Below are positions 12,173 to 36,003 of a stretch of 64,000 bases of DNA, piece after piece; the stretch's first letter is position 1, and the number at the start of each line of letters is the position of its first letter. A program made the position numbers and the translations under genes. The notes beneath the pieces are model-generated. The model made no database searches. It saw nothing but the letters and a program-made list of their open reading frames with translations, and had not been told where the DNA came from. Source of the DNA: Podarcis muralis (lineage: Eukaryota); the NCBI RefSeq assembly GCF_964188315.1, contig NC_135664.1, positions 2,170,001-2,234,000 on the forward strand. The letters are read 5' to 3'.

Positions 12173-12656
12173 ATTATCGTTATGGAATGGGACGTCTCTA
12201 TTTTCATCAGAGAAATGTTGGGCTGTATGCTTCTATTACTAGTACTAATAGTAACTATGTTATTTTACAGGTCTATCCCCAGTCAAGATCGGCATCTGTG
12301 TGGACTGCAGGTTGCAAAAAGGGGAAGGAAATACCTGCCACGGTTGTAGCCTTGCGTGTCCCCATTGCTCTCCTTCCTCCACCAAACGTCACAGGAAAGA
12401 CAATGTTTGAAAGCAGGACCTAGTTTCCCTGCAATAAATGAATTCTTTAAAAAGAGTGAAACTGATATTCATATGAATGGGGGGGAGGAAACATTATATG
12501 ATCCACAAAGATTAGTATTTATTTATCCTTTCACACTAATATCAAACCTGTCTAGCATAGAACAAAAATTTGGAAATCTCTGCTCCATGACCGGAGCTTT
12601 GATGCACACAGAGCTGTTGAGCAGTGGAACAGTCTCCCTCCGAAGGTGACCGTGTG

Positions 12657-12770
12657 TCATGGATGCTTCAGGTGAGATCCCTCCAGGTCCCTCCCAAGTC
12701 TTGGGTTCCCGCAGACTCCAAAGGGCATCATGAGCAGCAGAAGCAGCAACAGAAGGAGCAGGGATCTCAT
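12657..12770 (-). pseudogene. Possible V2R exon-1 remnant (signal peptide)
   Basis: [25 protein letters not shown]..., on the same strand as and upstream of V2R exon 4. Confidence 0.45.
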
Positions 12771-13264
12771 TCTGGCTCTGCCTCCTCCTCCTCTTACTTG
12801 CCAAGGAGGCGAAGCAGAAGAACCCAAAGACTCTTGCAAGACCAGACTGGGTGGGCTTTCCCAATCTGGGTGGTTTTCAACTATACCTTTGGAGCTCGGA
12901 AGCACAAGGCAGGCACACCCCTCTTTTGCCAGCTCTGCATCTTGACTCAGTCTGTCTCCAACACAGGAAATATTCTCGGCACCAACTTTTTCTTTCCCAG
13001 ACACAGCGCAATTAATATTGTCATGTTGCTTTCCGAGGCTCATGCAATCTACAGAAATATCTCCTGAGCTTTCAGAAGATGAGATGACTATAATTTTGAT
13101 TATTCCAAGTGGAATAAGTTTCACCACAATAACTTTCTGAAGTCTTGAATGGCTCAAGTGGCAGGTGCAGAGCTGGAGAAAAACATGATGGACAGGGGTG
13201 TGTTTGGAAGTTGGAAGTTTGGCCTGAACTTTGCTCCCAAGGACCAAAGAAGGAGCTGGATCCG

Positions 13265-13410
13265 ACCATGGACTCTCCTTCCTTGGAGGTTTTGAAGCAG
13301 AGGGTGGATGGCCATCTGTTGGGATTCTTTAGCTGAGATTCCTGCATTGCAGAGGGTTGGACTAGAGGACCTTGGGGTCCCTTTCCAAGTCTCCCATTCT
13401 ATGATTCATA
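13265..13410 (+). mobile_element. CR1 LINE 3' end (mirror at 34766-34911)
   Basis: GGACTCTCCTTCCTTGGAGGTTTTGAAGCAGAGG...CCTGCATTGCAGAGGGTTGGACTAGA...ATTCTATGATTC. Confidence 0.85.
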
Positions 13411-14254
13411 TGAGGTGGGAGAGTCAGGGATGGACAACAGCCAGATGTGGGAGTCCCAGCCTTGTATCCCAGGCATCCTAAGCCCTTTTAAAATGTGGGG
13501 TTTTTTGGGAGGGCAGAGGCTGTTATTGGGTTGTTGTTTTTATTTTGATTATATATATTGTGGTTTTATATTTTGATTTTGCTCTCTGAACCACCCTGAG
13601 ACCTCCAGGCATAGGGCTTTATATAGAGTCAATAAGTAAATTTAAAAAAATAAAAAAAATGGAGAATGCAGAGAAATGCCATCCTCAGTACTGTGAACGG
13701 GATACATGGCGGTGGGATTTTGTTTCCTGGCGGCTTCTAGAAACAGAGACTGGTGGAACCTGCGATGGGGAGGGTTTTCTCAAGCCCACCCTCTGGCCGC
13801 TATGGGTGGGTCTGGGCTGCTTGATTCCTGCCACTCTCTTCTGGTTCTCCCCCTGAAGGGAAGTAGCACCTTGGTGGCTTCGGAGCCACTTCAAGTGAAT
13901 TTCCACCCCATCTTTGAAAGGCTTCTCCAACAGAGGGAAGCTCTCTGGGGTTGGTGGAGGGGAGAAAGGTTGCTCTGAGCCTTAAACCTTTTGCCCTTTG
14001 ACATGTTTTGGGGAAGGTGAGCTTCTGTTGCACATGGAACCAACTTGCTCCCCGTCTTTGAGCAGAAACTTCTCTACTCATAAACAAATTGTCTGTGCAC
14101 AAGCCAGGCTAGCATTCTAGCAGCTTTATTATTCTTTATCAATATTTGTTTGTTTGTTTGTTTGATCTGTTTCATAAAATCCATGCCCCACTTGATTGGG
14201 CAAATAACTCCCATCTCTAACGATGTAACTCCATTTAAGTCTCCCATTAGTATA

Positions 14255-14435
14255 CAGTGGTACCTCTGGATGCGAACGGGATCCGTTCCGGAGCCCCCTT
14301 TGCATCCTGAAGCGAACGCAACCCACGTCTGCACGTGTGCTGGTCGCGATTCGCTGCTTCCATGCATGTGCGTGACATCATTTTGAGCGTTTGCGCGAAT
14401 GGCAAAACCCGGAAATAATGCGTTTTGTTACTTCC
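14255..14435 (+). mobile_element. Tigger-like DNA element fragment (mirror ~33741-33921; another fragment at 53921-54060)
   Basis: Starts TA-CAGTGGTACCTC, a Tigger-type terminal repeat. Confidence 0.65.
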
Positions 14436-14771
14436 TTTTTTTATATATATAAATTTTTATTAATTTTCCAACATAAATAAAAAACAATACAATAAACAAT
14501 ACATAAACACACAAACATATAAACACGTATAATTTCACAACCTCTTTTTCATAAACCTTACTTCCCCGACTTCCCCATACCTCCCCCTTCTGCATCCCTA
14601 TTTCAAAATTTCTTCAGCAACCCCTCGCTTCAATTGACTGATTACTCATTTTCTCCCCCCCCCTTTCTTCCATTACTTAATCAATTTACAGCTGTAATTC
14701 TATATTTTCTTAACCTTGACATTTTAGCACTCATCAATTTTACAACAATTCTTAAGGTAAACTTTAAATTT
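14436..14771 (-). mobile_element. 5'-truncated L1-type 3' tail with 15-bp TSD (mirror 33405-33740)
   Basis: CGTTTTGTTACTTCC is duplicated at 14421-14435 and 14772-14786. AATAAA and an A-rich tail lie on the minus strand. Confidence 0.85.
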
Positions 14772-15461
14772 CGTTTTGTTACTTCCAGGTTGCCGCGGAG
14801 CGCAACCTAAAAACTCTCAGTTTCCTTCTTATTGTAATTTCTTTGACCCCCAGAAGGTCTCACTGTCTCTTTTCTCAGTTCTTTCTTTAGCTGTCCCTTC
14901 TTGCTCGCTTGCTTTCCTCCTTTCTTTCCTCCTCCTCCTTTGGGCATGGGCAGCGTGAGCTAGCAGTTTTCCTACGCCATATTGCCCTTTCTTTTCAAGC
15001 CACCTTCCAGGATCGTTCCCCTCTCAGTCCTGCCTTCTCCTTCTCCTCCGCCACCGTAGACGCTGTCGTTCTCTCGCACTTCTCCTTCGCCGTCCACCCT
15101 TTGCCCGCTGTCTTCTCCGTTCTGCTCCGCAATCTCAAAAGGTGTCGGGCTCTAGGACTGGGGCTGGCCGTGTGGGACGCCAGCGTAGGGCCACATGGGG
15201 TTGGGTTTCTCGCCCCGCTTGCCTCCGCGCTCAGATCTTTTATTCCTCCTCTCCAGTTTGGACCACAAGGATTAAGACCTGTGCAAGGACAACAGAAAGG
15301 AAATGTCCCTTAGGGACTCGGGCGCCTCCAGGTGCTACTTCCCCTGCCACCACTGGCGGAGGAAGGTGGGGTGTGGGGGGGGGGGTATCGCCCCGAGTGT
15401 CATCCCAGGGGGGGGTGGCAAAATCCCCTGGGCGGATCGGTGCAAGCCTCCCAACTCCTCC

Positions 15462-17598
15462 TCATCTTGGTTCAGGGTGGACACAGCTGCGATGCTGCCG
15501 CATCCAGCGCCTGAGCCACGTGCAGAGTGGCCTCCTTTCCCCCTGCACCCCACTGCTGCCTCTTGTATTGGGTTGCTCTGGTGGCACTGGTGGTGCTGGC
15601 GGCAGCGCTCTTCTGAAGATCTTGCGAATCCGGGAGATGATGGAACCCAGGCAAGTGGGGGTCTTCGGAGGCCTCTCTTCCTCACAGTCCTGTGAGAAAA
15701 GTAAACAATTCACCTCCAGATTCTGGGAAAATGCCGCAATCATTAATCAATCAATCAAACAAACAAACAATTGATTGATTAAATCCGTACGCCGTCCTTC
15801 ATCTGAAGCTGTCAGGGCGGCTTACAGCATAAAAATACAAAATAAAAACACAACATATGTATTAAAAACAAAAACGAACTCATAAGCCAGCCTCCCAATC
15901 CACAAGCATGTTGAAAATGCCATGCGTTGGCCAATTAGCCCAAGGCTGGTTCTAGAGCAGAACTTTCCATGTTGGTGACACACTTTGGAGACATGCCTCA
16001 TTTCGCAACACAGGGATTCAGTTCAACTAGCCCTTTTCCAGCCCTGGGAGGAGCACACAGTTTGGAAAGCTCTGTTCTAGAGAAACGTCTTTGCTTGGCA
16101 CCTAAAGATACATAATGAAGATGCCAGATGAGCCTCCCTGGGAAGAGCATTCCGCAAGTGGGGAGCCACCACAGAAAAGGCCCCTTCTTGTGTTGCTGCC
16201 TCCAGACCGTTTGTGAAGGAGAAGGGCCTGTGTGGTGGCAGGCTGTCATAATCCCTCCTTTTCTTTTTGGGGGCAAGGCGTTATATGAAAGGGTTGTAGT
16301 CAGGAGGGAACACTCCTCTCCCAAGTTCTCATGTGGTCAGCCTTGGAGAGATCTCAACGAGACACAAAACCAAGAACAAGAGGGTGGGGGGAAGGTATAG
16401 GAGGCAGGAAAACCCCAGAGAGAACCGGCTTTGCAAAGTGCCAACATGGTTTTATTATCGCCAAACCCACTTTGCAATTAATAACTTCATTTGGCAGGAG
16501 CCACCTGGAAACGCATTCAAAAGAGATATCTTACAAAACAAACACCAAACCAAAAGCAACCCAGGAGAATTATCTCCACCCCCATCGTTCTGAGATCCAG
16601 TGCTGAGGGCCTTCTGGCGGTTCCCCACTGCGATAAGTGAAGTTACAGGGAACCAGGCAGAGGGCCTTCTCGGTAGTGGCACCCGCCCAGTGGAACGCCC
16701 TCCCGCCAGATGTCAAAGAAATAAACAACTATCTGACTTTTAGAAGACATGTGAAGACAGCCCTGTTCAGGGAAGCTTTTCATATGACATGAATGAATGT
16801 ATGTTTCGTCTGACCTCGATTACGCTTGCCTCCAGGTGTTCTCCAGGTGGGGTGCACGGCAAATAAAGGGCCTCCCCGTCCTCCTCTGGGGGGCTCTCTG
16901 GTACTTCCTGTGGCTCTTCCTCCTCGATAGCCACTTCAGAGGCTGCCTGCCAGCAGAGACAGGACCCCAGAGGTGGTGGCATTGGTGGTGGGGAGAGGGG
17001 AGAAAGAGAGGAGCCCAGAATGAGACAGGAACCCACATTGAGTCGCTAGCCAGGGAAGCCCTACAGCCCTGGCGCCATGGGGGGCTGGTCCATCAGGACA
17101 AGTGGGGCAGCAAGCCCATCTGCCCCCAGCAGCCCCCTGCCTGCGTGCCCCCTTGCTCACGACCAGTCCAGAAGGTGGCCTAACCGGCCAGCCGGCTTCC
17201 TCCTCCTCCTCCTCCTCCCCAGCCTCAGGGTTCTCCAGCTCAGCAGGGCTTCCCTCCTGCTCTGTCTGCTACGTACCTCATTGAGGGAGTCCCAAAGGGA
17301 ATCCAGGGAGGACAGGGAGGAAACACTAGAAAATGGTGACATACTTGGAACCTGCAAGGAAAAGATGCAAAAAACGAGCAATTAAAAAACGCAACCAAAC
17401 GTTAAAACTCAAGGCACCCATAACTGAAACAACAGTTCCATTCTGCGGTTGATATGCTTCCCTCCCCTTCTGCCAATCACCACTTAGGCCACGGCCACCT
17501 ACCCAGTCAGGGCTGAGGAGATCCAGCCGTTTTGCGGTCTCCTCCTCGCCTTTTCCTTCGTCCTCCTTGACATTGAGAATGTCCTCCTCGGTGGCTGA
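15462..17598 (-). CDS. Putative novel spliced gene, left-arm copy (exons 17503-17598, 17277-17351, 16815-16946, 15462-15689)
   Basis: Mirror image of 30579-32715. AG/GT boundaries, all junctions phase 0, reading frame open. Confidence 0.6.
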
Positions 17599-17989
17599 CT
17601 GCTAGCAGAGACAGGACCCCAGAGTTGACGGTGGGGAGAGAGGAGAAAGAGAGCATCCCAAAATGAGAGAGGAACCCAGAAGGGAAACTCTCTTGCCCAC
17701 ATTGAGTCGCTAGCCAGGGAAGCCCTACAGCCCTGGCGCCATGGGGGGCTGGTCCATCAGGACGAGTGGGGCAGCAAGCACAGCACATTCACTCTCAAGG
17801 CACCCATAATTCAAACAACAGAACAGGGGTATAGCCAGCTGCTTGGGTGCCCGGTTCAACGCGGGGGTCCTGTGGGCTTTCTGGAGCCTATCCTCTGCCT
17901 CCCCCCCAGCTGTAGGGCGGCTGAGGGAGAGGCAGGGGGCAGACGCAAGCCCCACGCTTCTGTTTCAGGCAGCACCCAGCCTGCAGGGG

Positions 17990-18880
17990 CCCAAGCCACC
18001 AAGTCACCCCCAGGAGAGATGCGTGGATCAGGCACTCTGCACACACACACCCCCCCGGTAAGTGCCAGCCCCCGCGATGCGGCGCCCAGTGCCAGCCGCG
18101 TTTTTTGACTCAACTAAAAGGTTTGGTGAGCCCAATTTTTATTTTTATTTTAAACTCGGCTTTATGTCCTTTTCCCACCCCCCTCAGTGATGACACCTGG
18201 GGCGGACCCCACCCCCCCACCCCCCACCCTCCTTTCTCTGCAACTGCAACAGAATAAAAGGACTCAAAACTCCCTTAGCAGTTTCCTGCTGGTCCCCTCA
18301 CCATTTCTCCAGACATCAGTCTTCAGACTTTGCTTTTTCGGTGTCCAATAAGAGTTTTTTCTGATTCACTTGCAGAGAAACCACCCAAAGGCTGTTGGCC
18401 TCAACTGTAAAGTGAGGCTGGGATTCTGAGCCGATGTCACAGCCAGGTTCCGATCAGTCCATTTCCTCCAAGGGGGGGGGGGACCTGTTTCCCCTGAGGG
18501 TGACCGCTGAACACACCACCCAAGGGAAAAAGAAGGAGAAAAGCAGAGAAATCTTTTAATTCTTTAGCAAGAAAGAATGAGTGCAAGGAGTTTTCTTTTC
18601 CCTGCACTCCTCCATTGCAACACCTTTTCATTACTATTATTATGCTAGATTTAATGAACACTCATATCAGAGTGCTCTGTAAATTGGTGGCCATAGTCTT
18701 TATATACTAACCTTTTATGCTCTTCCACATCCGTTTAATGCTCCTAAACCCTTCTTTTAGACTTTTATATATACTTTGTGTTAAATACTTTTTTTTGCTT
18801 TCCAAAACGTTTTACAGACTGAAAATGATTGTACCCCACTCTACTGATGCTGGTCTACTACTGTAATAAAGATTTGATTG
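17990..18880 (+). ncRNA. Putative spliced non-coding unit divergent from the novel gene
   Basis: Donor CCG|GTAAGT at 18057/8. Small exon 18376-18411 (TTGCAG| ... |GTGAGG). Terminal exon from 18818 (TTTTACAG|) with AATAAA. Confidence 0.35.
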
Positions 18881-19107
18881 ATTGAAATGAAAAATCCTAT
18901 AGAAATGCAATGACTGGACACTAATGTAATGTATTCCCCTCCCCCAAATTCATATTTTATTACTTATTAATATTAGTAAGAATAATAAAATGAGTTAAGC
19001 CAGAGGCTCCTCCCAGCTTAAATTTATATAGCACCCTTCATTGGAATGCTACAAGTTGAATCATAATAACAATGAAAGTTTCCACCAATTTGAAGTGATG
19101 AAAGTTT

Positions 19108-20234
19108 GGGGGGCCACTAGGGGGCGCATCGGAAGATGGCTGACAATAACATCTCTCCGACCCACACGAGGTAATTTGGAGGCTATGATGGGGGTAATTA
19201 GCCTCCCTAACCCCCCCCCCCAGGATGGTGGTGGGGCGGCCCTTGCCTGCTGTGCCTTATACCACCCCTGAATTTGTGGGGATGGGGGCACTAGGCACAA
19301 AGCCCTCCTGTGGGATTTTGGCACTCCTGGACGCCGTCCCTGATTCGCGCCACTAGCTGCAAGAACTTCAAAAGAAACAATTTGGATGAGGCGAATTGCA
19401 CATATCTCAAGGAAGAAGGGGGAGTAAAGACTGCTGACAGAAGAGATCTCTGATAAAACAAGACAAGAATAATCATGAGAAGATACGCCAAGACACGGTA
19501 CGGCAAATGACTGATGGGGGAGGGAAAAAAAACTTTCCTTTCTTTTCTTATGTGATTAAACAAGAATCCCCTCCCCTTATGAGTCAGAAATGTTGTTTTA
19601 AGGACTTAAGCTGTGGATTTAAGGCTGTGTGGAGATAAACTTTCGAACCAAAGCATGTTTTAAGAAGAGCGTGGAATGTATAAGAGCTTTGGAATGACGC
19701 AGTTAAAAATGCCATCGCCATATTGGGAAGCTCTGTCGGAGGTCTTGAGTCTGGGAGGAGAAAGAGAGAAACAAAGCTGTTTATATATTGTGGATTAAAC
19801 TCCTCAGTGGGACTTAAGAGCGACAGTTTTGCAAGATTATGATGGAAAGAGCGATGTTATCTATGAAGGAGATGATATATGGAAACCATCTTGATTTGAG
19901 GATTGGAAGAACGGAAAATTCACACAGGGTTATTATTACTATTGGTGTTTATTGGCTTAAGGAGACTATCAGAAGAGATCATAAAGAAAAAAGAGAAAAT
20001 ATATGAACAAGATGTGATGTGGAAACAGCAAGATAAGATGGGATAGAATTATGAACTCTGTCTGGACTGATTTGGACTGATTTGGACATTAACGCAGCAG
20101 CAAGAAGAAGATCAGAATTCCCCTTCGGATCTTGAAATATGGGTCCCCCCCAACAAAATTCAAAATTTGGCTTTGTAATTCGGAATTTATGTGATGTGAT
20201 TAAATTTGATGTGATTGGCCAGTTAATAAAAATT
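19108..20234 (+). mobile_element. 1.13-kb non-autonomous L1-like retroposon with 20-bp TSD
   Basis: ATTTGAAGTGATGAAAGTTT at 19088-19107 and 20235-20254. 5' end GGGGGG...GAAGATGGC, 3' AATAAAAA. An empty paralogous site is present at 42023-42042. Confidence 0.88.
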
Positions 20235-21209
20235 ATTTGAAGTGATGAAAGTTTAAGTACGATGCAATCTTGACTAATTAATATAAATGCTTCATCAGTG
20301 GCTGTTCTGTCAATTATTTTCACTTCCCATCTGATCTTGGTTTTGCTCTATAAATGGGGACCTGAATGGGAGGAACCTGAGTTGGAGGAGGAGGCCTCTT
20401 GCTTTTCCTTCCTGACTGAGCATAAGATGCCTCCTCTTAAAAGGTTTGGCAGGCAGGGAATCCAACTATCTGGCTTCGTCTCATTGCTTTCCTCCAATGC
20501 TAAACTTGTTGCTTGCTCACTCGTAATCTGGTGATCCACTCAACATCAGTGCACAACATGTCACATCCAGGCCAGTGTAATAAAACCCATTGGACTCCAG
20601 TCAAGGCTTGGCTAAGGTCAGTTGCTACTTTTTGGAACAGAGAGCAGAGCTTACACAATACAGAAATTAAACCAACAGACTACGGAAGATGTCTTAAATG
20701 AATTTCTCAGTTTATTGATATACAAAGCTTAGGAGAACAAAATGATGTGAAGTGTACTTATGAATGATACAGCATACATGTAGAAAATGGAGAAAATTCA
20801 ATAAATAGAAATGACATAACTAGAAACTATTGTTGAATATCAGAATTGATATGGTTAATAGGTAGTTAGGACAAAGGAATCACACTCAAAGACCTAACTC
20901 CTCTCTCCCTCCAGCCTATCTGGTTGTGAGATAAATATAACTTCTCAAAGCAAAAAATGATTAAATGATAAAACTTTACAAACTAAGGGCAGTAGACCAG
21001 GACTCATTGTAGTCCTTGGCAAAGCAAGGTAGCAAAACATTTCCTCCCATCTTACGGTTCATGTCAACAGGACTACACAAAACCTGGGCTAAGAAGGAAC
21101 ACAATCTCTTTCACAGATGAAGAATGAGCAACATGGATGAGCAAGTGTCTTTCCTTTATGCACTTCTGGGCATCGGGAACATGGACTATTTTAAGAATCA
21201 GATGTCCCC

Positions 21210-22922
21210 TTAATTTCTGGTTGTCAGGTGCTCCTTTGTGTTCAGATCAGGCCTCAGCACAATCATGTAGCACTTGGGAAGGAAGATGCAGCCCAGAAGC
21301 CCAGCACTGGAGGCCAACATAGAGAAGATCTGCACGGCCACCATGTACTTGCCCTTGGTGCTCAGGTAGGTGGGCACAAAAGACACCCAAACACTGCAGA
21401 AGACCAGCATGCTGAAGGTGATCAGCTTGGCTTCGTTGAAGGAGCCGGGCAGCTTCCTGGCTAGGAAAGCCACCGTGAAGCAGGTGGCAGCCAAGAAGCC
21501 CATGTAGCCGAGGGCAACGTAAAACATGGTCACAGACCCTTCGTTGCATTGCAGGATGATCTCTTCCACCTGGGAGAGCATGTCGGGCTCTGGGAATGGG
21601 GGAGAAGAGCCCAGCCAGATGGTGCAGATGAGAACTTGCCCCCCAGAACAGGAGATGACAATGGAGTTGGCCAGACTCTTGCCCAGCCATCTCCTCACCC
21701 TGTTCCCGGGCTTTGTGGCCAGGAAGGCCAGCACCACCGTGATGGTCTTTGCCAAGACAGAAGAAACAGCAACTGAGAAGATGATGCTGAAGGCCGTTTG
21801 TCGGAGAAGGCAGGTCTCTTTCCTTGGGCGCCCGATGAAGAGGAAGGAGGACAAAAAGGAAAGCAGGAGGGAGACGAGCAGGATGTAGGAGAGGTCTCGG
21901 TTGTTGGCTTTGACTATGGGAGTGTCCTTGTATTTAATGAAGATTCCCAACACAATGCCTGCAGTTATAGATAAGAAGAGGGTAACGGAAGCTAAAAACA
22001 TTCCTAAATATTCTCCATAAGTCAGGAAGGTAATAATCTTGGGGACACATTGATCTCTGTCCTTGTTTGGATACTGATCTTCTGAGCATTTGGTGCAATG
22101 TTCTGCATCTGAGGAAGTGGAAAAAGAGTGGCTGCAGCATCAGTTACATCCCTAATGATCTGTGCTCTTTTACGTTTTGAAAAACTCTGTGGTGGACTTC
22201 AGTAAACAAGAATGTTAAAATAGGTAAAGCAAAATTGTGATGTAGGATAAACTGAGTAGCAATGAGCACTCCGCTTCTGTTAACTGCATTTTTTTGGATC
22301 CTGCCTAATCCTGAAGAAACAGCTCTTTAACTTGACATTTGAAATGCAGTTTTCTGTTGCTTCCATGCAATGTTCCTAGTAGTGAGATCAAAACAGTCCA
22401 TTGATTATATTGTAATAATTTTCATATGAAGTATTGTTCATTTTTTATTGTGCTTTTGCTATTAAAAATTTGCTGGTTTGCATCACCTGTCCATTACTCT
22501 TTATAAATGTCAACATGATTTCCTTTTTGGTGTGACTTGGTATAAAAAATAAAGAAAGAATGCTTTATGGGCATTCCTCTCACAGCTGCCCACTTTCAAC
22601 CCCAGAGATTTCTTCCTTATGACCACTCCTTTCAACTCCCTTCCTGGATGTAATAAAGTTGATTAATCCTATGGATGTCGAGGAAGAATCCACATTCCCC
22701 AATGTCTGCAGAAATCTCACAAAAAGTGGGTGAGACTGGATTACTGCCCTGTGTTTACTCTCTCCAGAAATACCTTTCTCCTTGGAGTCACCCACCTTCC
22801 TGGGCGGAGAAGGTCCCTTCCGCACACCGAGCACAAGCATAGCAGCAAACGGGCTTTTCTTCTAGAACCACCTTGGCATATCCAGGTCGACATCTCTCTG
22901 TACACCTGGAACGAGGTACGGC
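21210..22922 (-). pseudogene. Vmn2r: V2R fragment, exons 5-6 only (22796-22922, 21210-22108), reading frame open
   Basis: Exon 5 [19 protein letters not shown]...QE, then the full 7TM exon. The upstream part is cut by the palindrome centre. Confidence 0.92.
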
Positions 22923-23185
22923 CTAACCAGAAAGACAAGAAGGTGCAACAAAGAGGAACAGTTAGGAGTATTTGTGGGTATGTCATTCACTCATAGGGTG
23001 AATTGAAACAGATATATGGTCTGCAGCCTTTGACGCCCTCATCAGGGTCCCTTCAACCCCCACTGACCATTGGGGTGACCAGAATATCTTGTTCTTCATA
23101 ATTCGTTCAGGACAACTGAGGTTTGCGCCACAGGCCTCTGATTCCTCTTCTCCGTTTACCTGCTTCCCTGCTTAATAAATCTTCA

Positions 23186-23435
23186 TTTTTTTTATTATAA
23201 TAAATTTTTATTGATTTTCCAAACACATAATAAAAACAAACAATACACAAAACAAAAACATACAAACATATAAACATGTATAATTTCATAATCTTATTTT
23301 CATACACCTTACTTCCCGGACTTCCCCATACCTCCCCTTTTCTGCATCCTTGTTTTACATTTCTTCAGCAACTCCTCCAATTAATTAATTATTTAAATCA
23401 CTTTCATTAGATTCTTTTTTCTTTAACTTACTTAT
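23186..23435 (-). mobile_element. L1-type 3' tail at the palindrome junction, no TSD
   Basis: A T-run starts exactly at 23186. The sequence is homologous to 14436-14771 and to ~61320-61499. Confidence 0.85.
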
Positions 23436-23659
23436 GGACTACATAGATAAGAAGAAAAGGGAAAGCCCCTAGTAAAAGGGAACTATTGGGTTTTCATACA
23501 TGCAGAAGGATGGAAAGCGATTTATTTTTGAAATGATAATTACTGATTTATTGTGGATTTTTTAAATTTGTGGAGTAAGCTCACTTGTAGATGTTGCAAT
23601 AGTTAAACTATTGTATGTGCAGGAATAGAGAAGTGCACAGTTGTTGGTGAAAGATGATA

Positions 23660-24886
23660 CCGTATTTTTCGCTCTATAACACGCACCAGACCATAACACG
23701 CACATAGTTTTTAGAGGAGGAAAACAAGGAAAAAATATTCTAAACGAAACAGTGGATGTATGATTTTTATGGTTCATGCTGTGGCCACAGACATGTGATC
23801 TGACAGTGAGTTTGGGGTAGCCCAATGCAAAAATCCTGAGGATCCATGTGGATCCATGCTTTGTAACCACGTTTTTGCGCCATTGCGCCCCCATGAAACA
23901 GTGGGTGCGTGTGTGTTTTTTGGTGCAGGCTATAGCCATGGAAATGCTATGTGATCTGATGGTGAATTTGGGGTGACCCAGTGCAAAAATCCTGAGGATC
24001 CATGTGGATCCGTGCTTTGTAACCACGTTTTAAGTGGGGAGGGAAGGAAAAGAACTCAAGGGACAAGGAGCACGTGTGGGGGGTGTAGAGAAGGAGCTTT
24101 CCTGCGAGCTGAGCGGGGAGGAGGGAGGGAAAGAGCACTGTTGCTTTAAAGGTATACTTAAGGTATTTGCCCTGTGCCTGGGTTTTTTCCATTTAACAGT
24201 TTGCAGCCTTTTCCGTCCGCTCCTTGTTTTGAGGCAGAATAGATTTGAGCAAGTGAGGAGGGCTTGGATTGCAGGGGATTCGCCATTAGCTGTGTAAAAG
24301 CGCTCCTCCTTGCAGCCTGAATGATAAGCAGCCACCAGCAGCAATAGAATGGAGCACAAAAAAGAGATAGGGGCACTAGGACCCAGACAATGCTCAAATC
24401 TATCCTGCCTGAAAACAAGCTGCTCCGTCCCAGCTGAGACGCGGGGATTTGCGAAGTTTTCCCCTCTCCCTCATCCCTCCCCAGCCTTTTTTTTTACTTC
24501 CTGGTTTTCACTGCGCTGGCTCAGAGCTCGAGGTTGGTTTTATTTTGCTGCTGGTTACTTAAATTTTATCTTTCCTGCCCTCCCTCTGCAGCCTCATTGC
24601 TCTGTTTAGAGAGCGCACAGACTTTTGCTAGCGTCTGTCCCTCCTCCCTTGTAAGCGGCTGCTGCCGGCTTTGCTGCCATGGCTCTCCTTCCCTCCCTCC
24701 TCCCCGGCTCCAGGTCGCTTTAAAGCAAGCAAAGTCAGAGCCTCGTAGAGCCTGTAAGTGGCTCCCGCTTTGCTTGACTGACGGCAGCCATGGCTCCGAT
24801 CCGTGCATTCGCTCCATAACACGCACAGGCATTTTCCCTTACTTTCTAGGAGCAAAAAAGTGCGTGTTTTGGAGCGAAAATTACGG
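23660..24886. mobile_element. Non-autonomous Tc2/pogo-like DNA transposon, 1227 bp
   Basis: TIRs CCGTATTTTTCGCTCTATAACACGCAC / GTGCGTGTTTTGGAGCGAAAATTACGG with TA on both sides. Internal ~65-bp direct repeat. Absent from the paralogous intron near 39280. Confidence 0.9.
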
Positions 24887-25253
24887 TAATTAAAAAAAAC
24901 CTATCGTAATATAAGATTAACATTAAGAAATGGCATGTAAACTAGAAATAACTAGGGAAATCACATTTCAGATTCCATTGCCATTTTCTTTGAAGATTTA
25001 TTAAGCAGGGAAGCAGGTAAACGGAGAAGAGGAATCAGAGTCCTGTGGCACAAACCTCAGTTGTCCTGAACGAATTATGAAGAACAAGATATTCTGGTCA
25101 CCCCAATGGTCAGTGGGGGTTGAAGGGACCCTGATGAGGGCGTCAAAGGCTGCAGACCATATATCTGTTTCAATTCACCCTATGAGTGAATGACATACCC
25201 ACAAATACTCCTAACTGTTCCTCTTTGTTGCACCTTCTTGTCTTTCTGGTTAG

Positions 25254-26965
25254 GCCGTACCTCGTTCCAGGTGTACAGAGAGATGTCGACCTGGATATGC
25301 CAAGGTGGTTCTAGAAGAAAAGCCCGTTTGCTGCTATGCTTGTGCTCGGTGTGCGGAAGGGACCTTCTCCGCCCAGGAAGGTGGGTGACTCCAAGGAGAA
25401 AGGTATTTCTGGAGAGAGTAAACACAGGGCAGTAATCCAGTCTCACCCACTTTTTGTGAGATTTCTGCAGACATTGGGGAATGTGGATTCTTCCTCGACA
25501 TCCATAGGATTAATCAACTTTATTACATCCAGGAAGGGAGTTGAAAGGAGTGGTCATAAGGAAGAAATCTCTGGGGTTGAAAGTGGGCAGCTGTGAGAGG
25601 AATGCCCATAAAGCATTCTTTCTTTATTTTTTATACCAAGTCACACCAAAAAGGAAATCATGTTGACATTTATAAAGAGTAATGGACAGGTGATGCAAAC
25701 CAGCAAATTTTTAATAGCAAAAGCACAATAAAAAATGAACAATACTTCATATGAAAATTATTACAATATAATCAATGGACTGTTTTGATCTCACTACTAG
25801 GAACATTGCATGGAAGCAACAGAAAACTGCATTTCAAATGTCAAGTTAAAGAGCTGTTTCTTCAGGATTAGGCAGGATCCAAAAAAATGCAGTTAACAGA
25901 AGCGGAGTGCTCATTGCTACTCAGTTTATCCTACATCACAATTTTGCTTTACCTATTTTAACATTCTTATTTCCTGAGGTCCACCGCAGAGTTTTTCAAA
26001 ACGTAAAAGAGCACAGATCATCAGGGATGTAAGTGATGTTGCAGCCACTCTTTTTCTCTTCCCCAGATGCAGAACATTGCACCAAATGCTCAGAAGATCA
26101 CCATTCAAACAAGGACAGAGATCAATGTGTCCCCAAGATTATTACCTTCCTGACTTATGAAGAATATTTGGGAATGGTTTTAGCTTCCGTTACCCTCTTC
26201 TTATCTATAACTGCAGGCACTGTGTTGGGAATCTTCATTAAATACAAGGAAACTCCCATAGTCAAAGCCAACAACCGGGACCTTTCCTACATCCTCCTCG
26301 TCTCCCTCCTGCTTTCCTTTTTGTCCTCCTTCCTCTTCATCGGGCGCCCAAGGAAAGAGACCTGCCTTCTCCGACAAACGGCCTTCAGCATCATCTTCTC
26401 AGTTGCTGTTTCTTCTGTCTTGGCAAAGACCATCACGGTGGTGCTGGCCTTCCTGGCCACAAAGCCCGGGAACAGGGTGAGGAGATGGCTGGGCAAGAGT
26501 CTGGCCAACTCCATTGTCATCTCCTGTTCTGGGGGGCAAGTTCTCATCTGCACCATCTGGCTGGGCTCTTCTCCCCCATTCCCAGAGCCCGACATGCGCT
26601 CCCAGGTGGAAGAGATCATCCTGCAATGCAACGAAGGGTCTGTGGCCATGTTTTACGTTGCCCTCGGCTACCTGGGCTTCTTGGCTGCCACCTGCTTCAC
26701 GGTGGCTTTCCTAGCCAGGAAGTTGCCCGGCTCCTTCAACGAAGCCAAGCTGATCACCTTCAGCATGCTGGTCTTCTGCAGTGTTTGGGTGTCTTTTGTG
26801 CCCACCTACCTGAGCACCAAGGGCAAGTACATGGTGGCCGTGCAGATCTTCTCTATGTTGGCCTCCAGTGCTGGGCTTCTGGGCTGCATCTTCCTTCCCA
26901 AGTGCTACATGATTGTGCTGAGGCCTGATCTGAACACAAAGGAGCACCTGACAACCAGAAATTAA
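25254..26965 (+). pseudogene. Vmn2r: V2R fragment, exons 5-6 (25254-25380, 26067-26965), reading frame open
   Basis: 127-nt exon TTAG|GCC...GAAG|GT and 899-nt 7TM exon. The gene begins mid-intron 4 at 23436. Confidence 0.92.
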
Positions 26966-27940
26966 GGGGACATATGATTCTTAAAATAGTCCATGTTCCC
27001 GATGCCCAGAAGTGCATAAAGGAAAGACACTTGCTCATCCATGTTGCTCATTCTTCATCTGTGAAAGAGATTGTGTTCATTCTTAGCCCAGGTTTTGTGT
27101 AGTCCTGTTGACATGAACCGTAAGATGGGAGGAAATGTTTTGCTACCTTGCTTTGCCAAGGACTACAATGAGTCCTGGTCTACTGCCCTTAGTTTGTAAA
27201 GTTTTATCATTTAATCATTTTTTGCTTTGAGAAGTTATATTTATCTCACAACAAGATAGGCTGGAGGGAGAGAGGAGTTAGGTCTTTGAGTGTGATTCCT
27301 TTGTCCTAACTACCTATTAACCATATCAATTCTGATATTCAACAATAGTTTCTAGTTATGTCATTTCTATTTATTGAATTTTCTCCATTTTCTACATGTA
27401 TGCTGTATCATTCATAAGTACACTTCACGTCATTTTGTTCTCCTAAGCTTTGTATATCAATAAACTGAGAAATTCATTTAAGACATCTTCCGTAGTCTGT
27501 TGGTTTAATTTCTGTATTGTGTAAGCTCTGCTCTCTGTTCCAAAAAGTAGCAACTGACCTTAGCCAAGCCTTGACTGGAGTCCAATGGGTTTTATTACAC
27601 TGGCCTGGATGTGACATGTTGTGCACTGATGTTGAGTGGATCACCAGATTACGAGTGAGCCAGCAAGAAGTTTAGCATTGGAGGAAAGCAATGAGACGAT
27701 GCCAGATAGTTGGATTCCCTGCCTGCCAAACCTTTTAAGAGGAGGCATCTTATGCTCAGTCAGGAAGGAAAAGCAAGAGGCCTCCTCCTCCAACTCAGGT
27801 TCCTCCCATTCAGGTCCCCATTTATAGAGCAAAACCAAGATCAGATGGGAAGTGAAAATAATTGACAGAACAGCCACTGATGAAGCATTTATATTAATTA
27901 GTCAAGATTGCATCGTACTTAAACTTTCATCACTTCAAAT

Positions 27941-29070
27941 AATTTTTATTAACTGGCCAATCACATCAAATTTAATCACATCACATAAATTCCGAATTAC
28001 AAAGCCAAATTTTGAATTTTGTTGGGGGGGACCCATATTTCAAGATCCGAAGGGGAATTCTGATCTTCTTCTTGCTGCTGCGTTAATGTCCAAATCAGTC
28101 CAAATCAGTCCAGACAGAGTTCATAATTCTATCCCATCTTATCTTGCTGTTTCCACATCACATCTTGTTCATATATTTTCTCTTTTTTCTTTATGATCTC
28201 TTCTGATAGTCTCCTTAAGCCAATAAACACCAATAGTAATAATAACCCTGTGTGAATTTTCCGTTCTTCCAATCCTCAAATCAAGATGGTTTCCATATAT
28301 CATCTCCTTCATAGATAACATCGCTCTTTCCATCATAATCTTGCAAAACTGTCGCTCTTAAGTCCCACTGAGGAGTTTAATCCACAATATATAAACAGCT
28401 TTGTTTCTCTCTTTCTCCTCCCAGACTCAAGACCTCCGACAGAGCTTCCCAATATGGCGATGGCATTTTTAACTGCGTCATTCCAAAGCTCTTATACATT
28501 CCACGCTCTTCTTAAAACATGCTTTGGTTCGAAAGTTTATCTCCACACAGCCTTAAATCCACAGCTTAAGTCCTTAAAACAACATTTCTGACTCATAAGG
28601 GGAGGGGATTCTTGTTTAATCACATAAGAAAAGAAAGGAAAGTTTTTTTTCCCTCCCCCATCAGTCATTTGCCGTACCGTGTCTTGGCGTATCTTCTCAT
28701 GATTATTCTTGTCTTGTTTTATCAGAGATCTCTTCTGTCAGCAGTCTTTACTCCCCCTTCTTCCTTGAGATATGTGCAATTCGCCTCATCCAAATTGTTT
28801 CTTTTGAAGTTCTTGCAGCTAGTGGCGCGAATCAGGGACGGCGTCCAGGAGTGCCAAAATCCCACAGGAGGGCTTTGTGCCTAGTGCCCCCATCCCCACA
28901 AATTCAGGGGTGGTATAAGGCACAGCAGGCAAGGGCCGCCCCACCACCATCCTGGGGGGGGGGGGGGTTAGGGAGGCTAATTACCCCCATCATAGCCTCC
29001 AAATTACCTCGTGTGGGTCGGAGAGATGTTATTGTCAGCCATCTTCCGATGCGCCCCCTAGTGGCCCCCC
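27941..29070 (-). mobile_element. Mirror copy of the 1.13-kb retroposon
   Basis: TSD AAACTTTCATCACTTCAAAT at 27921-27940 and 29071-29090. Confidence 0.88.
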
Positions 29071-30578
29071 AAACTTTCATCACTTCAAATTGGTGGAAAC
29101 TTTCATTGTTATTATGATTCAACTTGTAGCATTCCAATGAAGGGTGCTATATAAATTTAAGCTGGGAGGAGCCTCTGGCTTAACTCATTTTATTATTCTT
29201 ACTAATATTAATAAGTAATAAAATATGAATTTGGGGGAGGGGAATACATTACATTAGTGTCCAGTCATTGCATTTCTATAGGATTTTTCATTTCAATCAA
29301 TCAAATCTTTATTACAGTAGTAGACCAGCATCAGTAGAGTGGGGTACAATCATTTTCAGTCTGTAAAACGTTTTGGAAAGCAAAAAAAAGTATTTAACAC
29401 AAAGTATATATAAAAGTCTAAAAGAAGGGTTTAGGAGCATTAAACGGATGTGGAAGAGCATAAAAGGTTAGTATATAAAGACTATGGCCACCAATTTACA
29501 GAGCACTCTGATATGAGTGTTCATTAAATCTAGCATAATAATAGTAATGAAAAGGTGTTGCAATGGAGGAGTGCAGGGAAAAGAAAACTCCTTGCACTCA
29601 TTCTTTCTTGCTAAAGAATTAAAAGATTTCTCTGCTTTTCTCCTTCTTTTTCCCTTGGGTGGTGTGTTCAGCGGTCACCCTCAGGGGAAACAGGTCCCCC
29701 CCCCCTTGGAGGAAATGGACTGATCGGAACCTGGCTGTGACATCGGCTCAGAATCCCAGCCTCACTTTACAGTTGAGGCCAACAGCCTTTTGGTGGTTTC
29801 TCTGCAAGTGAATCAGAAAAAACTCTTATTGGACACCGAAAAAGCAAAGTCTGAAGACTGATGTCTGGAGAAATGGTGAGGGGACCAGCAGGAAACTGCT
29901 AAGGGAGTTTTGAGTCCTTTTATTCTGTTGCAGTTGCAGAGAAAGGAGGGTGGGGGGTGGGGGGGTGGGGTCCGCCCCAGGTGTCATCACTGAGGGGGGT
30001 GGGAAAAGGACATAAAGCCGAGTTTAAAATAAAAATAAAAATTGGGCTCACCAAACCTTTTAGTTGAGTCAAAAAACGCGGCTGGCACTGGGCGCCGCAT
30101 CGCGGGGGCTGGCACTTACCGGGGGGGGGTGTGTGTGCAGAGTGCCTGATCCACGCATCTCTCCTGGGGGTGACTTGGTGGCTTGGGCCCCTGCAGGCTG
30201 GGTGCTGCCTGAAACAGAAGCGTGGGGCTTGCGTCTGCCCCCTGCCTCTCCCTCAGCCGCCCTACAGCTGGGGGGGAGGCAGAGGATAGGCTCCAGAAAG
30301 CCCACAGGACCCCCGCGTTGAACCGGGCACCCAAGCAGCTGGCTATACCCCTGTTCTGTTGTTTGAATTATGGGTGCCTTGAGAGTGAATGTGCTGTGCT
30401 TGCTGCCCCACTCGTCCTGATGGACCAGCCCCCCATGGCGCCAGGGCTGTAGGGCTTCCCTGGCTAGCGACTCAATGTGGGCAAGAGAGTTTCCCTTCTG
30501 GGTTCCTCTCTCATTTTGGGATGCTCTCTTTCTCCTCTCTCCCCACCGTCAACTCTGGGGTCCTGTCTCTGCTAGCAG

Positions 30579-32715
30579 TCAGCCACCGAGGAGGACATTC
30601 TCAATGTCAAGGAGGACGAAGGAAAAGGCGAGGAGGAGACCGCAAAACGGCTGGATCTCCTCAGCCCTGACTGGGTAGGTGGCCGTGGCCTAAGTGGTGA
30701 TTGGCAGAAGGGGAGGGAAGCATATCAACCGCAGAATGGAACTGTTGTTTCAGTTATGGGTGCCTTGAGTTTTAACGTTTGGTTGCGTTTTTTAATTGCT
30801 CGTTTTTTGCATCTTTTCCTTGCAGGTTCCAAGTATGTCACCATTTTCTAGTGTTTCCTCCCTGTCCTCCCTGGATTCCCTTTGGGACTCCCTCAATGAG
30901 GTACGTAGCAGACAGAGCAGGAGGGAAGCCCTGCTGAGCTGGAGAACCCTGAGGCTGGGGAGGAGGAGGAGGAGGAGGAAGCCGGCTGGCCGGTTAGGCC
31001 ACCTTCTGGACTGGTCGTGAGCAAGGGGGCACGCAGGCAGGGGGCTGCTGGGGGCAGATGGGCTTGCTGCCCCACTTGTCCTGATGGACCAGCCCCCCAT
31101 GGCGCCAGGGCTGTAGGGCTTCCCTGGCTAGCGACTCAATGTGGGTTCCTGTCTCATTCTGGGCTCCTCTCTTTCTCCCCTCTCCCCACCACCAATGCCA
31201 CCACCTCTGGGGTCCTGTCTCTGCTGGCAGGCAGCCTCTGAAGTGGCTATCGAGGAGGAAGAGCCACAGGAAGTACCAGAGAGCCCCCCAGAGGAGGACG
31301 GGGAGGCCCTTTATTTGCCGTGCACCCCACCTGGAGAACACCTGGAGGCAAGCGTAATCGAGGTCAGACGAAACATACATTCATTCATGTCATATGAAAA
31401 GCTTCCCTGAACAGGGCTGTCTTCACATGTCTTCTAAAAGTCAGATAGTTGTTTATTTCTTTGACATCTGGCGGGAGGGCGTTCCACTGGGCGGGTGCCA
31501 CTACCGAGAAGGCCCTCTGCCTGGTTCCCTGTAACTTCACTTATCGCAGTGGGGAACCGCCAGAAGGCCCTCAGCACTGGATCTCAGAACGATGGGGGTG
31601 GAGATAATTCTCCTGGGTTGCTTTTGGTTTGGTGTTTGTTTTGTAAGATATCTCTTTTGAATGCGTTTCCAGGTGGCTCCTGCCAAATGAAGTTATTAAT
31701 TGCAAAGTGGGTTTGGCGATAATAAAACCATGTTGGCACTTTGCAAAGCCGGTTCTCTCTGGGGTTTTCCTGCCTCCTATACCTTCCCCCCACCCTCTTG
31801 TTCTTGGTTTTGTGTCTCGTTGAGATCTCTCCAAGGCTGACCACATGAGAACTTGGGAGAGGAGTGTTCCCTCCTGACTACAACCCTTTCATATAACGCC
31901 TTGCCCCCAAAAAGAAAAGGAGGGATTATGACAGCCTGCCACCACACAGGCCCTTCTCCTTCACAAACGGTCTGGAGGCAGCAACACAAGAAGGGGCCTT
32001 TTCTGTGGTGGCTCCCCACTTGCGGAATGCTCTTCCCAGGGAGGCTCATCTGGCATCTTCATTATGTATCTTTAGGTGCCAAGCAAAGACGTTTCTCTAG
32101 AACAGAGCTTTCCAAACTGTGTGCTCCTCCCAGGGCTGGAAAAGGGCTAGTTGAACTGAATCCCTGTGTTGCGAAATGAGGCATGTCTCCAAAGTGTGTC
32201 ACCAACATGGAAAGTTCTGCTCTAGAACCAGCCTTGGGCTAATTGGCCAACGCATGGCATTTTCAACATGCTTGTGGATTGGGAGGCTGGCTTATGAGTT
32301 CGTTTTTGTTTTTAATACATATGTTGTGTTTTTATTTTGTATTTTTATGCTGTAAGCCGCCCTGACAGCTTCAGATGAAGGACGGCGTACGGATTTAATC
32401 AATCAATTGTTTGTTTGTTTGATTGATTGATTAATGATTGCGGCATTTTCCCAGAATCTGGAGGTGAATTGTTTACTTTTCTCACAGGACTGTGAGGAAG
32501 AGAGGCCTCCGAAGACCCCCACTTGCCTGGGTTCCATCATCTCCCGGATTCGCAAGATCTTCAGAAGAGCGCTGCCGCCAGCACCACCAGTGCCACCAGA
32601 GCAACCCAATACAAGAGGCAGCAGTGGGGTGCAGGGGGAAAGGAGGCCACTCTGCACGTGGCTCAGGCGCTGGATGCGGCAGCATCGCAGCTGTGTCCAC
32701 CCTGAACCAAGATGA
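30579..32715 (+). CDS. Putative novel spliced gene (exons 30579-30674, 30826-30900, 31231-31362, 32488-32715); 141 aa from ATG 30835
   Basis: Exons of 96, 75, 132 and 228 nt, each preceded by a pyrimidine tract and AG; the first three end in GT and the last ends in the stop codon. All junctions phase 0. AATAAA at 32932. Confidence 0.62.
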
Positions 32716-35405
32716 GGAGGAGTTGGGAGGCTTGCACCGATCCGCCCAGGGGATTTTGCCACCCCCCCCTGGGATGACACTCGGGGCGATACCCCCCCCC
32801 CACACCCCACCTTCCTCCGCCAGTGGTGGCAGGGGAAGTAGCACCTGGAGGCGCCCGAGTCCCTAAGGGACATTTCCTTTCTGTTGTCCTTGCACAGGTC
32901 TTAATCCTTGTGGTCCAAACTGGAGAGGAGGAATAAAAGATCTGAGCGCGGAGGCAAGCGGGGCGAGAAACCCAACCCCATGTGGCCCTACGCTGGCGTC
33001 CCACACGGCCAGCCCCAGTCCTAGAGCCCGACACCTTTTGAGATTGCGGAGCAGAACGGAGAAGACAGCGGGCAAAGGGTGGACGGCGAAGGAGAAGTGC
33101 GAGAGAACGACAGCGTCTACGGTGGCGGAGGAGAAGGAGAAGGCAGGACTGAGAGGGGAACGATCCTGGAAGGTGGCTTGAAAAGAAAGGGCAATATGGC
33201 GTAGGAAAACTGCTAGCTCACGCTGCCCATGCCCAAAGGAGGAGGAGGAAAGAAAGGAGGAAAGCAAGCGAGCAAGAAGGGACAGCTAAAGAAAGAACTG
33301 AGAAAAGAGACAGTGAGACCTTCTGGGGGTCAAAGAAATTACAATAAGAAGGAAACTGAGAGTTTTTAGGTTGCGCTCCGCGGCAACCTGGAAGTAACAA
33401 AACGAAATTTAAAGTTTACCTTAAGAATTGTTGTAAAATTGATGAGTGCTAAAATGTCAAGGTTAAGAAAATATAGAATTACAGCTGTAAATTGATTAAG
33501 TAATGGAAGAAAGGGGGGGGGAGAAAATGAGTAATCAGTCAATTGAAGCGAGGGGTTGCTGAAGAAATTTTGAAATAGGGATGCAGAAGGGGGAGGTATG
33601 GGGAAGTCGGGGAAGTAAGGTTTATGAAAAAGAGGTTGTGAAATTATACGTGTTTATATGTTTGTGTGTTTATGTATTGTTTATTGTATTGTTTTTTATT
33701 TATGTTGGAAAATTAATAAAAATTTATATATATAAAAAAAGGAAGTAACAAAACGCATTATTTCCGGGTTTTGCCATTCGCGCAAACGCTCAAAATGATG
33801 TCACGCACATGCATGGAAGCAGCGAATCGCGACCAGCACACGTGCAGACGTGGGTTGCGTTCGCTTCAGGATGCAAAGGGGGCTCCGGAACGGATCCCGT
33901 TCGCATCCAGAGGTACCACTGTATACTAATGGGAGACTTAAATGGAGTTACATCGTTAGAGATGGGAGTTATTTGCCCAATCAAGTGGGGCATGGATTTT
34001 ATGAAACAGATCAAACAAACAAACAAACAAATATTGATAAAGAATAATAAAGCTGCTAGAATGCTAGCCTGGCTTGTGCACAGACAATTTGTTTATGAGT
34101 AGAGAAGTTTCTGCTCAAAGACGGGGAGCAAGTTGGTTCCATGTGCAACAGAAGCTCACCTTCCCCAAAACATGTCAAAGGGCAAAAGGTTTAAGGCTCA
34201 GAGCAACCTTTCTCCCCTCCACCAACCCCAGAGAGCTTCCCTCTGTTGGAGAAGCCTTTCAAAGATGGGGTGGAAATTCACTTGAAGTGGCTCCGAAGCC
34301 ACCAAGGTGCTACTTCCCTTCAGGGGGAGAACCAGAAGAGAGTGGCAGGAATCAAGCAGCCCAGACCCACCCATAGCGGCCAGAGGGTGGGCTTGAGAAA
34401 ACCCTCCCCATCGCAGGTTCCACCAGTCTCTGTTTCTAGAAGCCGCCAGGAAACAAAATCCCACCGCCATGTATCCCGTTCACAGTACTGAGGATGGCAT
34501 TTCTCTGCATTCTCCATTTTTTTTATTTTTTTAAATTTACTTATTGACTCTATATAAAGCCCTATGCCTGGAGGTCTCAGGGTGGTTCAGAGAGCAAAAT
34601 CAAAATATAAAACCACAATATATATAATCAAAATAAAAACAACAACCCAATAACAGCCTCTGCCCTCCCAAAAAACCCCACATTTTAAAAGGGCTTAGGA
34701 TGCCTGGGATACAAGGCTGGGACTCCCACATCTGGCTGTTGTCCATCCCTGACTCTCCCACCTCATATGAATCATAGAATGGGAGACTTGGAAAGGGACC
34801 CCAAGGTCCTCTAGTCCAACCCTCTGCAATGCAGGAATCTCAGCTAAAGAATCCCAACAGATGGCCATCCACCCTCTGCTTCAAAACCTCCAAGGAAGGA
34901 GAGTCCATGGTCGGATCCAGCTCCTTCTTTGGTCCTTGGGAGCAAAGTTCAGGCCAAACTTCCAACTTCCAAACACACCCCTGTCCATCATGTTTTTCTC
35001 CAGCTCTGCACCTGCCACTTGAGCCATTCAAGACTTCAGAAAGTTATTGTGGTGAAACTTATTCCACTTGGAATAATCAAAATTATAGTCATCTCATCTT
35101 CTGAAAGCTCAGGAGATATTTCTGTAGATTGCATGAGCCTCGGAAAGCAACATGACAATATTAATTGCGCTGTGTCTGGGAAAGAAAAAGTTGGTGCCGA
35201 GAATATTTCCTGTGTTGGAGACAGACTGAGTCAAGATGCAGAGCTGGCAAAAGAGGGGTGTGCCTGCCTTGTGCTTCCGAGCTCCAAAGGTATAGTTGAA
35301 AACCACCCAGATTGGGAAAGCCCACCCAGTCTGGTCTTGCAAGAGTCTTTGGGTTCTTCTGCTTCGCCTCCTTGGCAAGTAAGAGGAGGAGGAGGCAGAG
35401 CCAGA

Positions 35406-35519
35406 ATGAGATCCCTGCTCCTTCTGTTGCTGCTTCTGCTGCTCATGATGCCCTTTGGAGTCTGCGGGAACCCAAGACTTGGGAGGGACCTGGAGGGATC
35501 TCACCTGAAGCATCCATGA
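35406..35519 (+). pseudogene. Possible V2R exon-1 remnant (signal peptide)
   Basis: ATG at 35406 gives [21 protein letters not shown]. It then runs into CR1-like antisense sequence and stops. Confidence 0.45.
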
Positions 35520-36003
35520 CACACGGTCACCTTCGGAGGGAGACTGTTCCACTGCTCAACAGCTCTGTGTGCATCAAAGCTCCGGTCATGGAGCAGAGAT
35601 TTCCAAATTTTTGTTCTATGCTAGACAGGTTTGATATTAGTGTGAAAGGATAAATAAATACTAATCTTTGTGGATCATATAATGTTTCCTCCCCCCCATT
35701 CATATGAATATCAGTTTCACTCTTTTTAAAGAATTCATTTATTGCAGGGAAACTAGGTCCTGCTTTCAAACATTGTCTTTCCTGTGACGTTTGGTGGAGG
35801 AAGGAGAGCAATGGGGACACGCAAGGCTACAACCGTGGCAGGTATTTCCTTCCCCTTTTTGCAACCTGCAGTCCACACAGATGCCGATCTTGACTGGGGA
35901 TAGACCTGTAAAATAACATAGTTACTATTAGTACTAGTAATAGAAGCATACAGCCCAACATTTCTCTGATGAAAATAGAGACGTCCCATTCCATAACGAT
36001 AAT

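Follow-up and report, generated by a model that had tools for sequence, protein, structure and literature searches.

The inverted repeat in the V2R cluster of Podarcis muralis carries a short piece of retroposon at its centre, and the question that it raises is whether this piece closed the fold-back that joined the two arms or entered a palindrome that was already there. We analyzed this locus in a stretch of 64,000 nucleotides (contig NC_135664.1, positions 2,170,001 to 2,234,000 of the forward strand, hereafter the window). Whether the tail bridged the fold-back or landed later and deleted the centre cannot be told from sequence alone. Our favored reading, to which we give a probability of about 0.4, is a single rearrangement in which the cDNA of a poly(A) retroposon would have closed the fold-back and joined the palindrome arms.

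The inverted repeat and its native arm

The arms of the inverted repeat are 16,343 nt long and 99.58% complementary (69 differences). The left arm spans 6843-23185 and the right arm 24991-41333, with a structured spacer of ~1.8 kb in between (23186-24990), and no N runs or gaps were found in the window. V2R exons were placed using Pfam and tblastn. On the + strand of the right arm, the exon encoding the 7tm_3 domain (exon 6) was located at 26033-26965 and 40145-41077, with mirrors at 21210-22124 and 7099-8031. The Cys-rich exon 5 was located at 25254-25385 and 39784-39915 (mirrors 22791-22922 and 8261-8392), and exon 4 only at 38565-38825 (mirror 9351-9611), so that the left arm holds mirrored exons 4, 5 and 6. 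The right arm comprises two tandem partial V2R units that are 92-98% alike, unit 1 with exons 5-6 and unit 2 with exons 4-6.

To orient the arms, we used V2R copy 2 as paralog reference (exon 4 and intron 4, 38565-39520, + strand), in which 39061 is the equivalent of 23436 and 39521 that of 24991. The paralog B' from unit 2 (39061-40098) aligns to 23436-25572 and crosses the end of the right arm at 24991 without a break, its segment 39485-39630 running through this point, while the paralogy between units 1 and 2 (25992-27940 and 40103-42042) crosses 41333. Because paralogy runs through both of its ends, the right arm together with the spacer is native and the left arm is the inverted copy. The exon positions place both 23436 and 24991 inside V2R intron 4.

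Within the spacer, the retroposon tail described below is followed by native intron-4 DNA of copy 1 (23436-23658, + strand, homologous to 39061-39282), by a non-autonomous DNA transposon with terminal inverted repeats (TIRs) of 1229 bp (23659-24887) that is missing from paralog B', and by native intron-4 DNA contiguous with the right arm (24888-24990, + strand). Segment 23436-23657 matches 39061-39282 with 93.7% identity in direct orientation, which confirms, with the exon map, the preliminary description of this DNA in its claim that intron 4 resumes at 23436. Given this make-up, native DNA separates the two fold-back breakpoints by 326 bp, a distance that grows to 1555 bp when the transposon is counted. 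Searching the spacer for a decayed continuation of the left arm yielded nothing beyond two matches of 29-51 nt.

The DNA transposon has TIRs of ~28 bp (ACCGTATTTTTCGCTCTATAACACGCAC...) that match at ~25/28 positions and an empty site at the paralogous positions 39282-39292, and many read contigs have joints that skip the element. In all runs, word depth was highest over 23588-24109, which includes parts of this transposon, indicating that its family is extremely abundant.

Exon 4 is kept in unit 2, 235 bp upstream of the point homologous to 23436, and unit 1 lacks it. Since copy 2 runs on upstream to exon 4, position 23436 is a real truncation of intron 4 in unit 1. For the same reason, we discarded the reading of 23436/39061 as the mere edge of an older duplication between the two units, copy 2 reaching exon 4 at 38565-38825. 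Upstream of exons 4-6 of copy 2 (31448-38565, + strand), no ANF_receptor ORF of the size of exon 3 was seen; this copy may itself be a partial gene. The same segment holds acidic, Ser-rich ORFs.

The outer boundary (6506-7612) is graded. Arm identity drops outward in steps (99.93%, about 98.8%, about 92%), with 1.2% divergence at 7092-7612, ~8% at 6848-7091, a 45-bp indel, and a match of 77-97% at 6506-6805. Past the arms, inverted homology goes on in colinear patches (4179-6842 against 41334-45461), and a satellite array at 1-4178 is mirrored by 46856-48549. As this graded homology continues beyond 6843 to the mirrored satellites, an inverted V2R unit predates the event, and position 6843 was rejected as a novel breakpoint because homology runs on in register. 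The new arm joins the older unit in register, which argues for homology-driven outer joining, for instance by break-induced replication, template switching or gene conversion.

The 69 arm differences are unevenly distributed. Twenty-seven lie at the graded outer end (6848-7612) and 33 in a ~2% patch in the region of the unit-1 7TM exon (20475-22207, against 25969-27700), with 9 over the 12.9 kb between the two, of which 5 are homopolymer indels. The final 978 bp before 23185 contain 2 differences. In the patch, the right copy agrees with unit 2 and it is the left copy that deviates, a pattern that looks like paralog-to-paralog conversion in one arm after the arms had become identical. The ORF at this place is shorter in the left copy (263 aa, against 310 aa). 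The arms are thus distinct, patterned copies, either very young or recently homogenized.

The retroposon tail at the inner junction

At its inner end, the left arm reads ...AATAAATCTTCA followed by TTTTTTTTATT, the last arm bases being TCTTCA, whereas the mirrored right arm and paralog B continue from ...AATAAATCTTCA into AAGAAAATGGC (the sequence directly past AATAAATCTTCA in the left arm is also given as TTTTTTTT). This comparison bears out the arm end at 23185 and the target TCTTCA/AAGAAAA that had been proposed for it. With an offset of 0 bp, the arm end adjoins a T8 run (23186-23193), which is the A8 tail of a retroposon on the minus strand. The T-run and reverse-oriented tail starting at 23186 are thus as the preliminary description had them, with homology to the 3' tail of the retroposon secure over 23186-23405 and AATAAA-type signals within ~25 nt, upstream of the A-tail. 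The following segment (23406-23435) is ambiguous: it aligns both to the retroposon, with 14 of its last 20 bases matching, and to the native intron of a paralog present in the reads, whose contigs have loose ends at 23434; paralog B' looks similar here. It is likely a microhomology join, and the tail measures ~220-250 bp, its 5' limit being secure only to about 23405.

In the window, 23181-23405 matches 14431-14653 and the mirror of that segment with 81.5% identity (E 1e-49), and a weaker match lies at 61330-61499. The first of these belongs to a sister retroposon copy (14437-14775, minus strand, 340 bp, ending in A7, with its mirror at about 33401-33739) that is longer than the junction copy and flanked by a perfect 15-bp target site duplication (TSD), CGTTTTGTTACTTCC. 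Two tail motifs of 21-30 nt are confined to these copies, with 0 expected by chance. In public runs, contigs sharing at least 95% identity with 23240-23413 reached a depth 30-100 times that of the arms, so the tail represents a real and abundant family. We conclude that this family is a recently active poly(A) retroposon. The local sister copy was considered as DNA donor of the tail and ruled out, its identity being only 81.5%. No reverse transcriptase (RT) or endonuclease (EN) domain was found in 20 ORFs of the window, in which Pfam hits were to 7tm_3 only, and we call the tail L1-type as an inference from its poly(A) tail and the TSD only.

No TSD was found around the junction tail, in agreement with the preliminary description, which had further argued for an endonuclease-independent insertion from a target that is not TTTT/AA. 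The target does differ from TTTT/AA, and it consists of a pyrimidine run followed by a purine run. It also resembles the priming site of the TSD-flanked sister copy (ACTTCC/AGG, against TCTTCA/AAG here), the two sharing a 4-mer in register and two further bases; with one comparator, this likeness is a hint only. An intact A8 tail and the similar priming site of the sister copy make endonuclease independence doubtful, and the argument is not supported in the form in which it was made.

How the junction may have formed

Read along the + strand, the locus presents the 3' end of the arm, the T8 run and then the antisense tail. This order makes the polarity of the tail that of a first-strand cDNA primed from the 3'-OH of the arm, and the 0-bp abutment with A8 (A7 in the sister copy) fits what target-primed reverse transcription gives. 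Under the favored reading, the RNA of a poly(A) retroposon of L1 type would have been reverse-transcribed from the free 3'-OH of the strand ending in ...TCTTCA, this strand being the inverted copy of 41333->24991. Some 220-250 nt of cDNA would have been made, and its 3' end would have joined intron-4 DNA on the complementary strand at ~23406-23436, probably via microhomology of a few bases, at a point that lies 326 bp further upstream when native DNA alone is counted and 1555 bp with the DNA transposon; this join would have closed the fold-back. The far end of the 16.3-kb inverted copy would have been anchored by homology in the older inverted V2R unit, at ~6500-7600.

One route consistent with this starts from a break near 23436 that was resected on its 5' strand as far as 24991. 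A strand that came from the older inverted unit and was copying the right arm would run off where the resection ended, RT would extend it, and the 3' overhang would capture the product. We regard it as rather doubtful that a heritable germline palindrome of 16 kb arose in this one step, with a run-off strand, endonuclease-free extension by RT and capture on the opposite 3' overhang, in a geometry that is the reverse of that in tumors.

Several observations speak for bridging beyond the exact arm end with its T8 and antisense tail. The tail belongs to a family that is bona fide retroposed, with TSDs elsewhere, and intron 4 of V2R copy 1 is cut at 23436 where copy 2 continues to exon 4. The outer boundary is in register with older homology, and polyadenylated L1 inserts in fold-back junctions have precedent. 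Contigs from runs X1 and X17 that are at least 95% like the sequence from 23436 onward have, before 23434, a native-looking intron (...GGACAGAATCTTTAACCAA) in place of the retroposon tail, and they would represent either a close paralog or an unrearranged allele. One junction and one event suffice. As the arms are very young outside the conversion patches, with only the 9 differences noted above, a second independent hit at the centre had little time to occur. Gene conversion between the arms could give old arms a young appearance, and against fast conversion of this kind speaks the patch that was not homogenized.

Other observations count against it. The primer end ...TTCA has no complementarity to poly(A) and cannot pair with it, the poly(A) adjoins the side opposite to that in tumor fold-backs, where it lies next to the longer, spacer-bearing side, the L1 identity of the tail is itself an assignment by likeness, and the junction words came from one run only. 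The end product is moreover the same as that of an insertion with deletion in an existing palindrome. The central claim of the preliminary description, that the tail joined broken ends and created a germline palindrome, is therefore kept in part: polarity and 0-bp abutment agree with it, and the identical sequence expected from insertion with deletion, together with an outer boundary that is based on homology, does not single it out.

An insertion-mediated deletion would be a no less ordinary route to this product, albeit one that we consider unlikely. A palindrome with longer arms would have come first, its left arm once mirroring 23436-24990 and the centre. Target-primed integration at TCTTCA/AAGAAAA in the left arm, with the 5' end of the element joined downstream at 23436, would then have removed at least 0.3-1.6 kb and the centre, leaving no TSD and an asymmetric spacer. 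The missing TSD, intact A-tail, 5' truncation and possible microhomology join are hallmarks of L1-mediated deletions, and the site CTTCA/AAG is like the CTTCC/AGG of the TSD-flanked sister copy, a weak hint given the single comparator. Large palindromes are unstable at their centre, and the older inverted paralogy means that the locus was already inverted-repeat-like. L1-mediated deletions are also far commoner than L1 fold-backs, with 90 events in PMC7058536 and sizes mostly <10 kb (bioRxiv 10.1101/2024.12.14.628481). Against this history, an extra fold-back junction, now erased, is needed, and a second rare central event has to be accommodated although the arms differ so little, unless they are still converting each other, a condition against which the unhomogenized 2% patch at 20475-22207 argues.

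It is improbable that the inverted copy or the 23185/23186 join was mis-assembled among near-identical V2R paralogs. We searched public runs with an 851-bp query from the flanks, yielding 20 runs from 7 studies; all of these runs carry the label organism A, and the share of query words found in them was 0.33-0.69. For a 60-mer with every 31-mer across 23185/23186, two words were sampled and both were present in one run, X25 (organism B); junction words were not reported among the 20 organism-A runs in which the flanks occur, as a mis-assembly would predict. The region 21500-26700 is multi-copy in the reads, with a depth several-fold above expectation and many variant bases, which points in the same direction. 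On the other side stand the lack of N gaps, a junction that carries a 1.8-kb structured spacer and is not a bare fold-back, arm differences in a pattern explained by paralog conversion, and the two sampled junction-spanning words of X25. Among the records listed for this multi-copy region in four runs there was no contig or read bridging 23185/23186, nor a fold-back joint or loose end at that place, a result that speaks neither for the junction nor against it. In run X24, nearly all reads differ from the window in both arms at several mirrored sites (for example 22777/22779 and 25399/25397), so the animals that were sampled are not like the assembled one. We take the read data as weak support for a real junction, which may be lineage-specific or polymorphic, and junction words confined to a single run may mean that the palindrome variant is still polymorphic, although two sampled words are too weak a basis for calling polymorphism.

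We give equally little credence to a DNA-templated filler, in which a template switch of the MMBIR/FoSTeS type would have copied ~230 bp from another retroposon copy with neither RNA nor RT. Templated insertions are frequent in replicative inverted duplications, homology drove the joining at the outer boundary, and the retroposon family is abundant. Such copying leaves unexplained why the filler starts at the exact first base of the A-tail with no microhomology to TCTTCA; the usual source of templated inserts is DNA close by, where the copy at hand has only 81.5% identity.

Least credible is a passive role, in which the tail was an earlier ordinary insertion in intron 4 of V2R copy 1, the fold-back break fell by chance in its T-tract and end joining sealed it: homopolymer or AT-rich tracts can be fragile, and at its 5' end the tail looks truncated in the normal way, with a microhomology join, but tail polarity and 0-bp abutment make a pre-existing element unlikely, the break would need to fall within ~1 bp of the tail end (T8, against T7 in the sister copy) and to remove the whole left TSD, and the contigs of the close paralog or allele show the native intron without the tail.

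Comparison with known systems

Large palindromes of primate sex chromosomes have near-identical arms that are kept so by arm-to-arm gene conversion. The lizard repeat is similar in that its arms are ~99.9% alike and its outer boundary fades into diverged inverted homology. It differs in the 2% patch that persists without being homogenized, and in the two tandem V2R units of its arms, the old outer unit looking single.

Palindromes of the hairpin type were reportedly described by Tanaka in 2002. In fold-backs from breakage-replication/fusion, junctions are direct or use microhomology (PMC12807874). The lizard locus shares with both an asymmetric spacer that is contiguous with one arm and a breakpoint spacing in the range of 5' resection, and it differs from them by its filler, which resembles retroposon cDNA.

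Insertion of L1 at double-strand breaks independently of its endonuclease is said to have been found by Morrish in 2002. Typical of such non-classical insertions (NCLI) are a truncated 3' end or a missing A-tail, and microhomology on either side (Sen et al. 2007, PMC1920257). The missing TSD, a target that may be non-consensus and the rearranged target site are shared with the lizard locus. In the lizard, by contrast, the A8 tail is complete and complementarity is lacking at the 3' junction, only the 5' end being ambiguous.

For L1 insertion-mediated deletions, which Gilbert in 2002 and Han in 2005 are said to have described, and of which the 90 events cited above are examples, the likeness extends to the missing TSD, the intact A-tail, a pyrimidine/purine nick site, the 5' truncation and the loss of target DNA in the kb range. 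The DNA presumed to be deleted in the lizard would differ from these cases in being the centre of a palindrome, and its loss is itself presumed.

The closest class is that of L1-mediated fold-back inversions, described in human tumors and in L1-expressing cell clones (Rodriguez-Martin et al. 2020, PMC7058536; bioRxiv 10.1101/2024.12.14.628481), where the ability of L1 cDNA to bridge rearrangements, on which the preliminary description had relied, is documented. In these cases as in the lizard, a short, polyadenylated and 5'-truncated piece lies in a head-to-head junction with no TSD, and the breakpoints are 0.3-5.5 kb apart. The published cases are somatic and megabase-scale, forming dicentric or iso-chromosomes, whereas the lizard case is germline, measures 16.3 kb and has its far end closed by homology. 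The host is a lizard, and its element would be L1-type by its features. The model of a primary RT end places the poly(A) next to the side that keeps the spacer, whereas in the lizard it adjoins the shorter arm, which has no spacer; this geometry would need RT extension of a run-off end or of an independent 3' end. By strand logic, the second breakpoint at 23436 lies beyond the primed end and not inside it, where the model of L1 fold-backs has it.

The L1-bridged fold-backs of cancer genomes and cell models start amplification cycles there. True bridging at this locus would mean that such an accident can end, in the germline, in a palindrome that is viable and inherited, and that chemoreceptor genes of a rapidly evolving V2R array can be duplicated and truncated by it. 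Insertion with deletion would mean that a retroposon can reshape, and perhaps stabilize, the centre of a large palindrome. With either history, the locus adds a reptilian case from the germline to a known class of L1-associated rearrangements and calls for no new mechanism.
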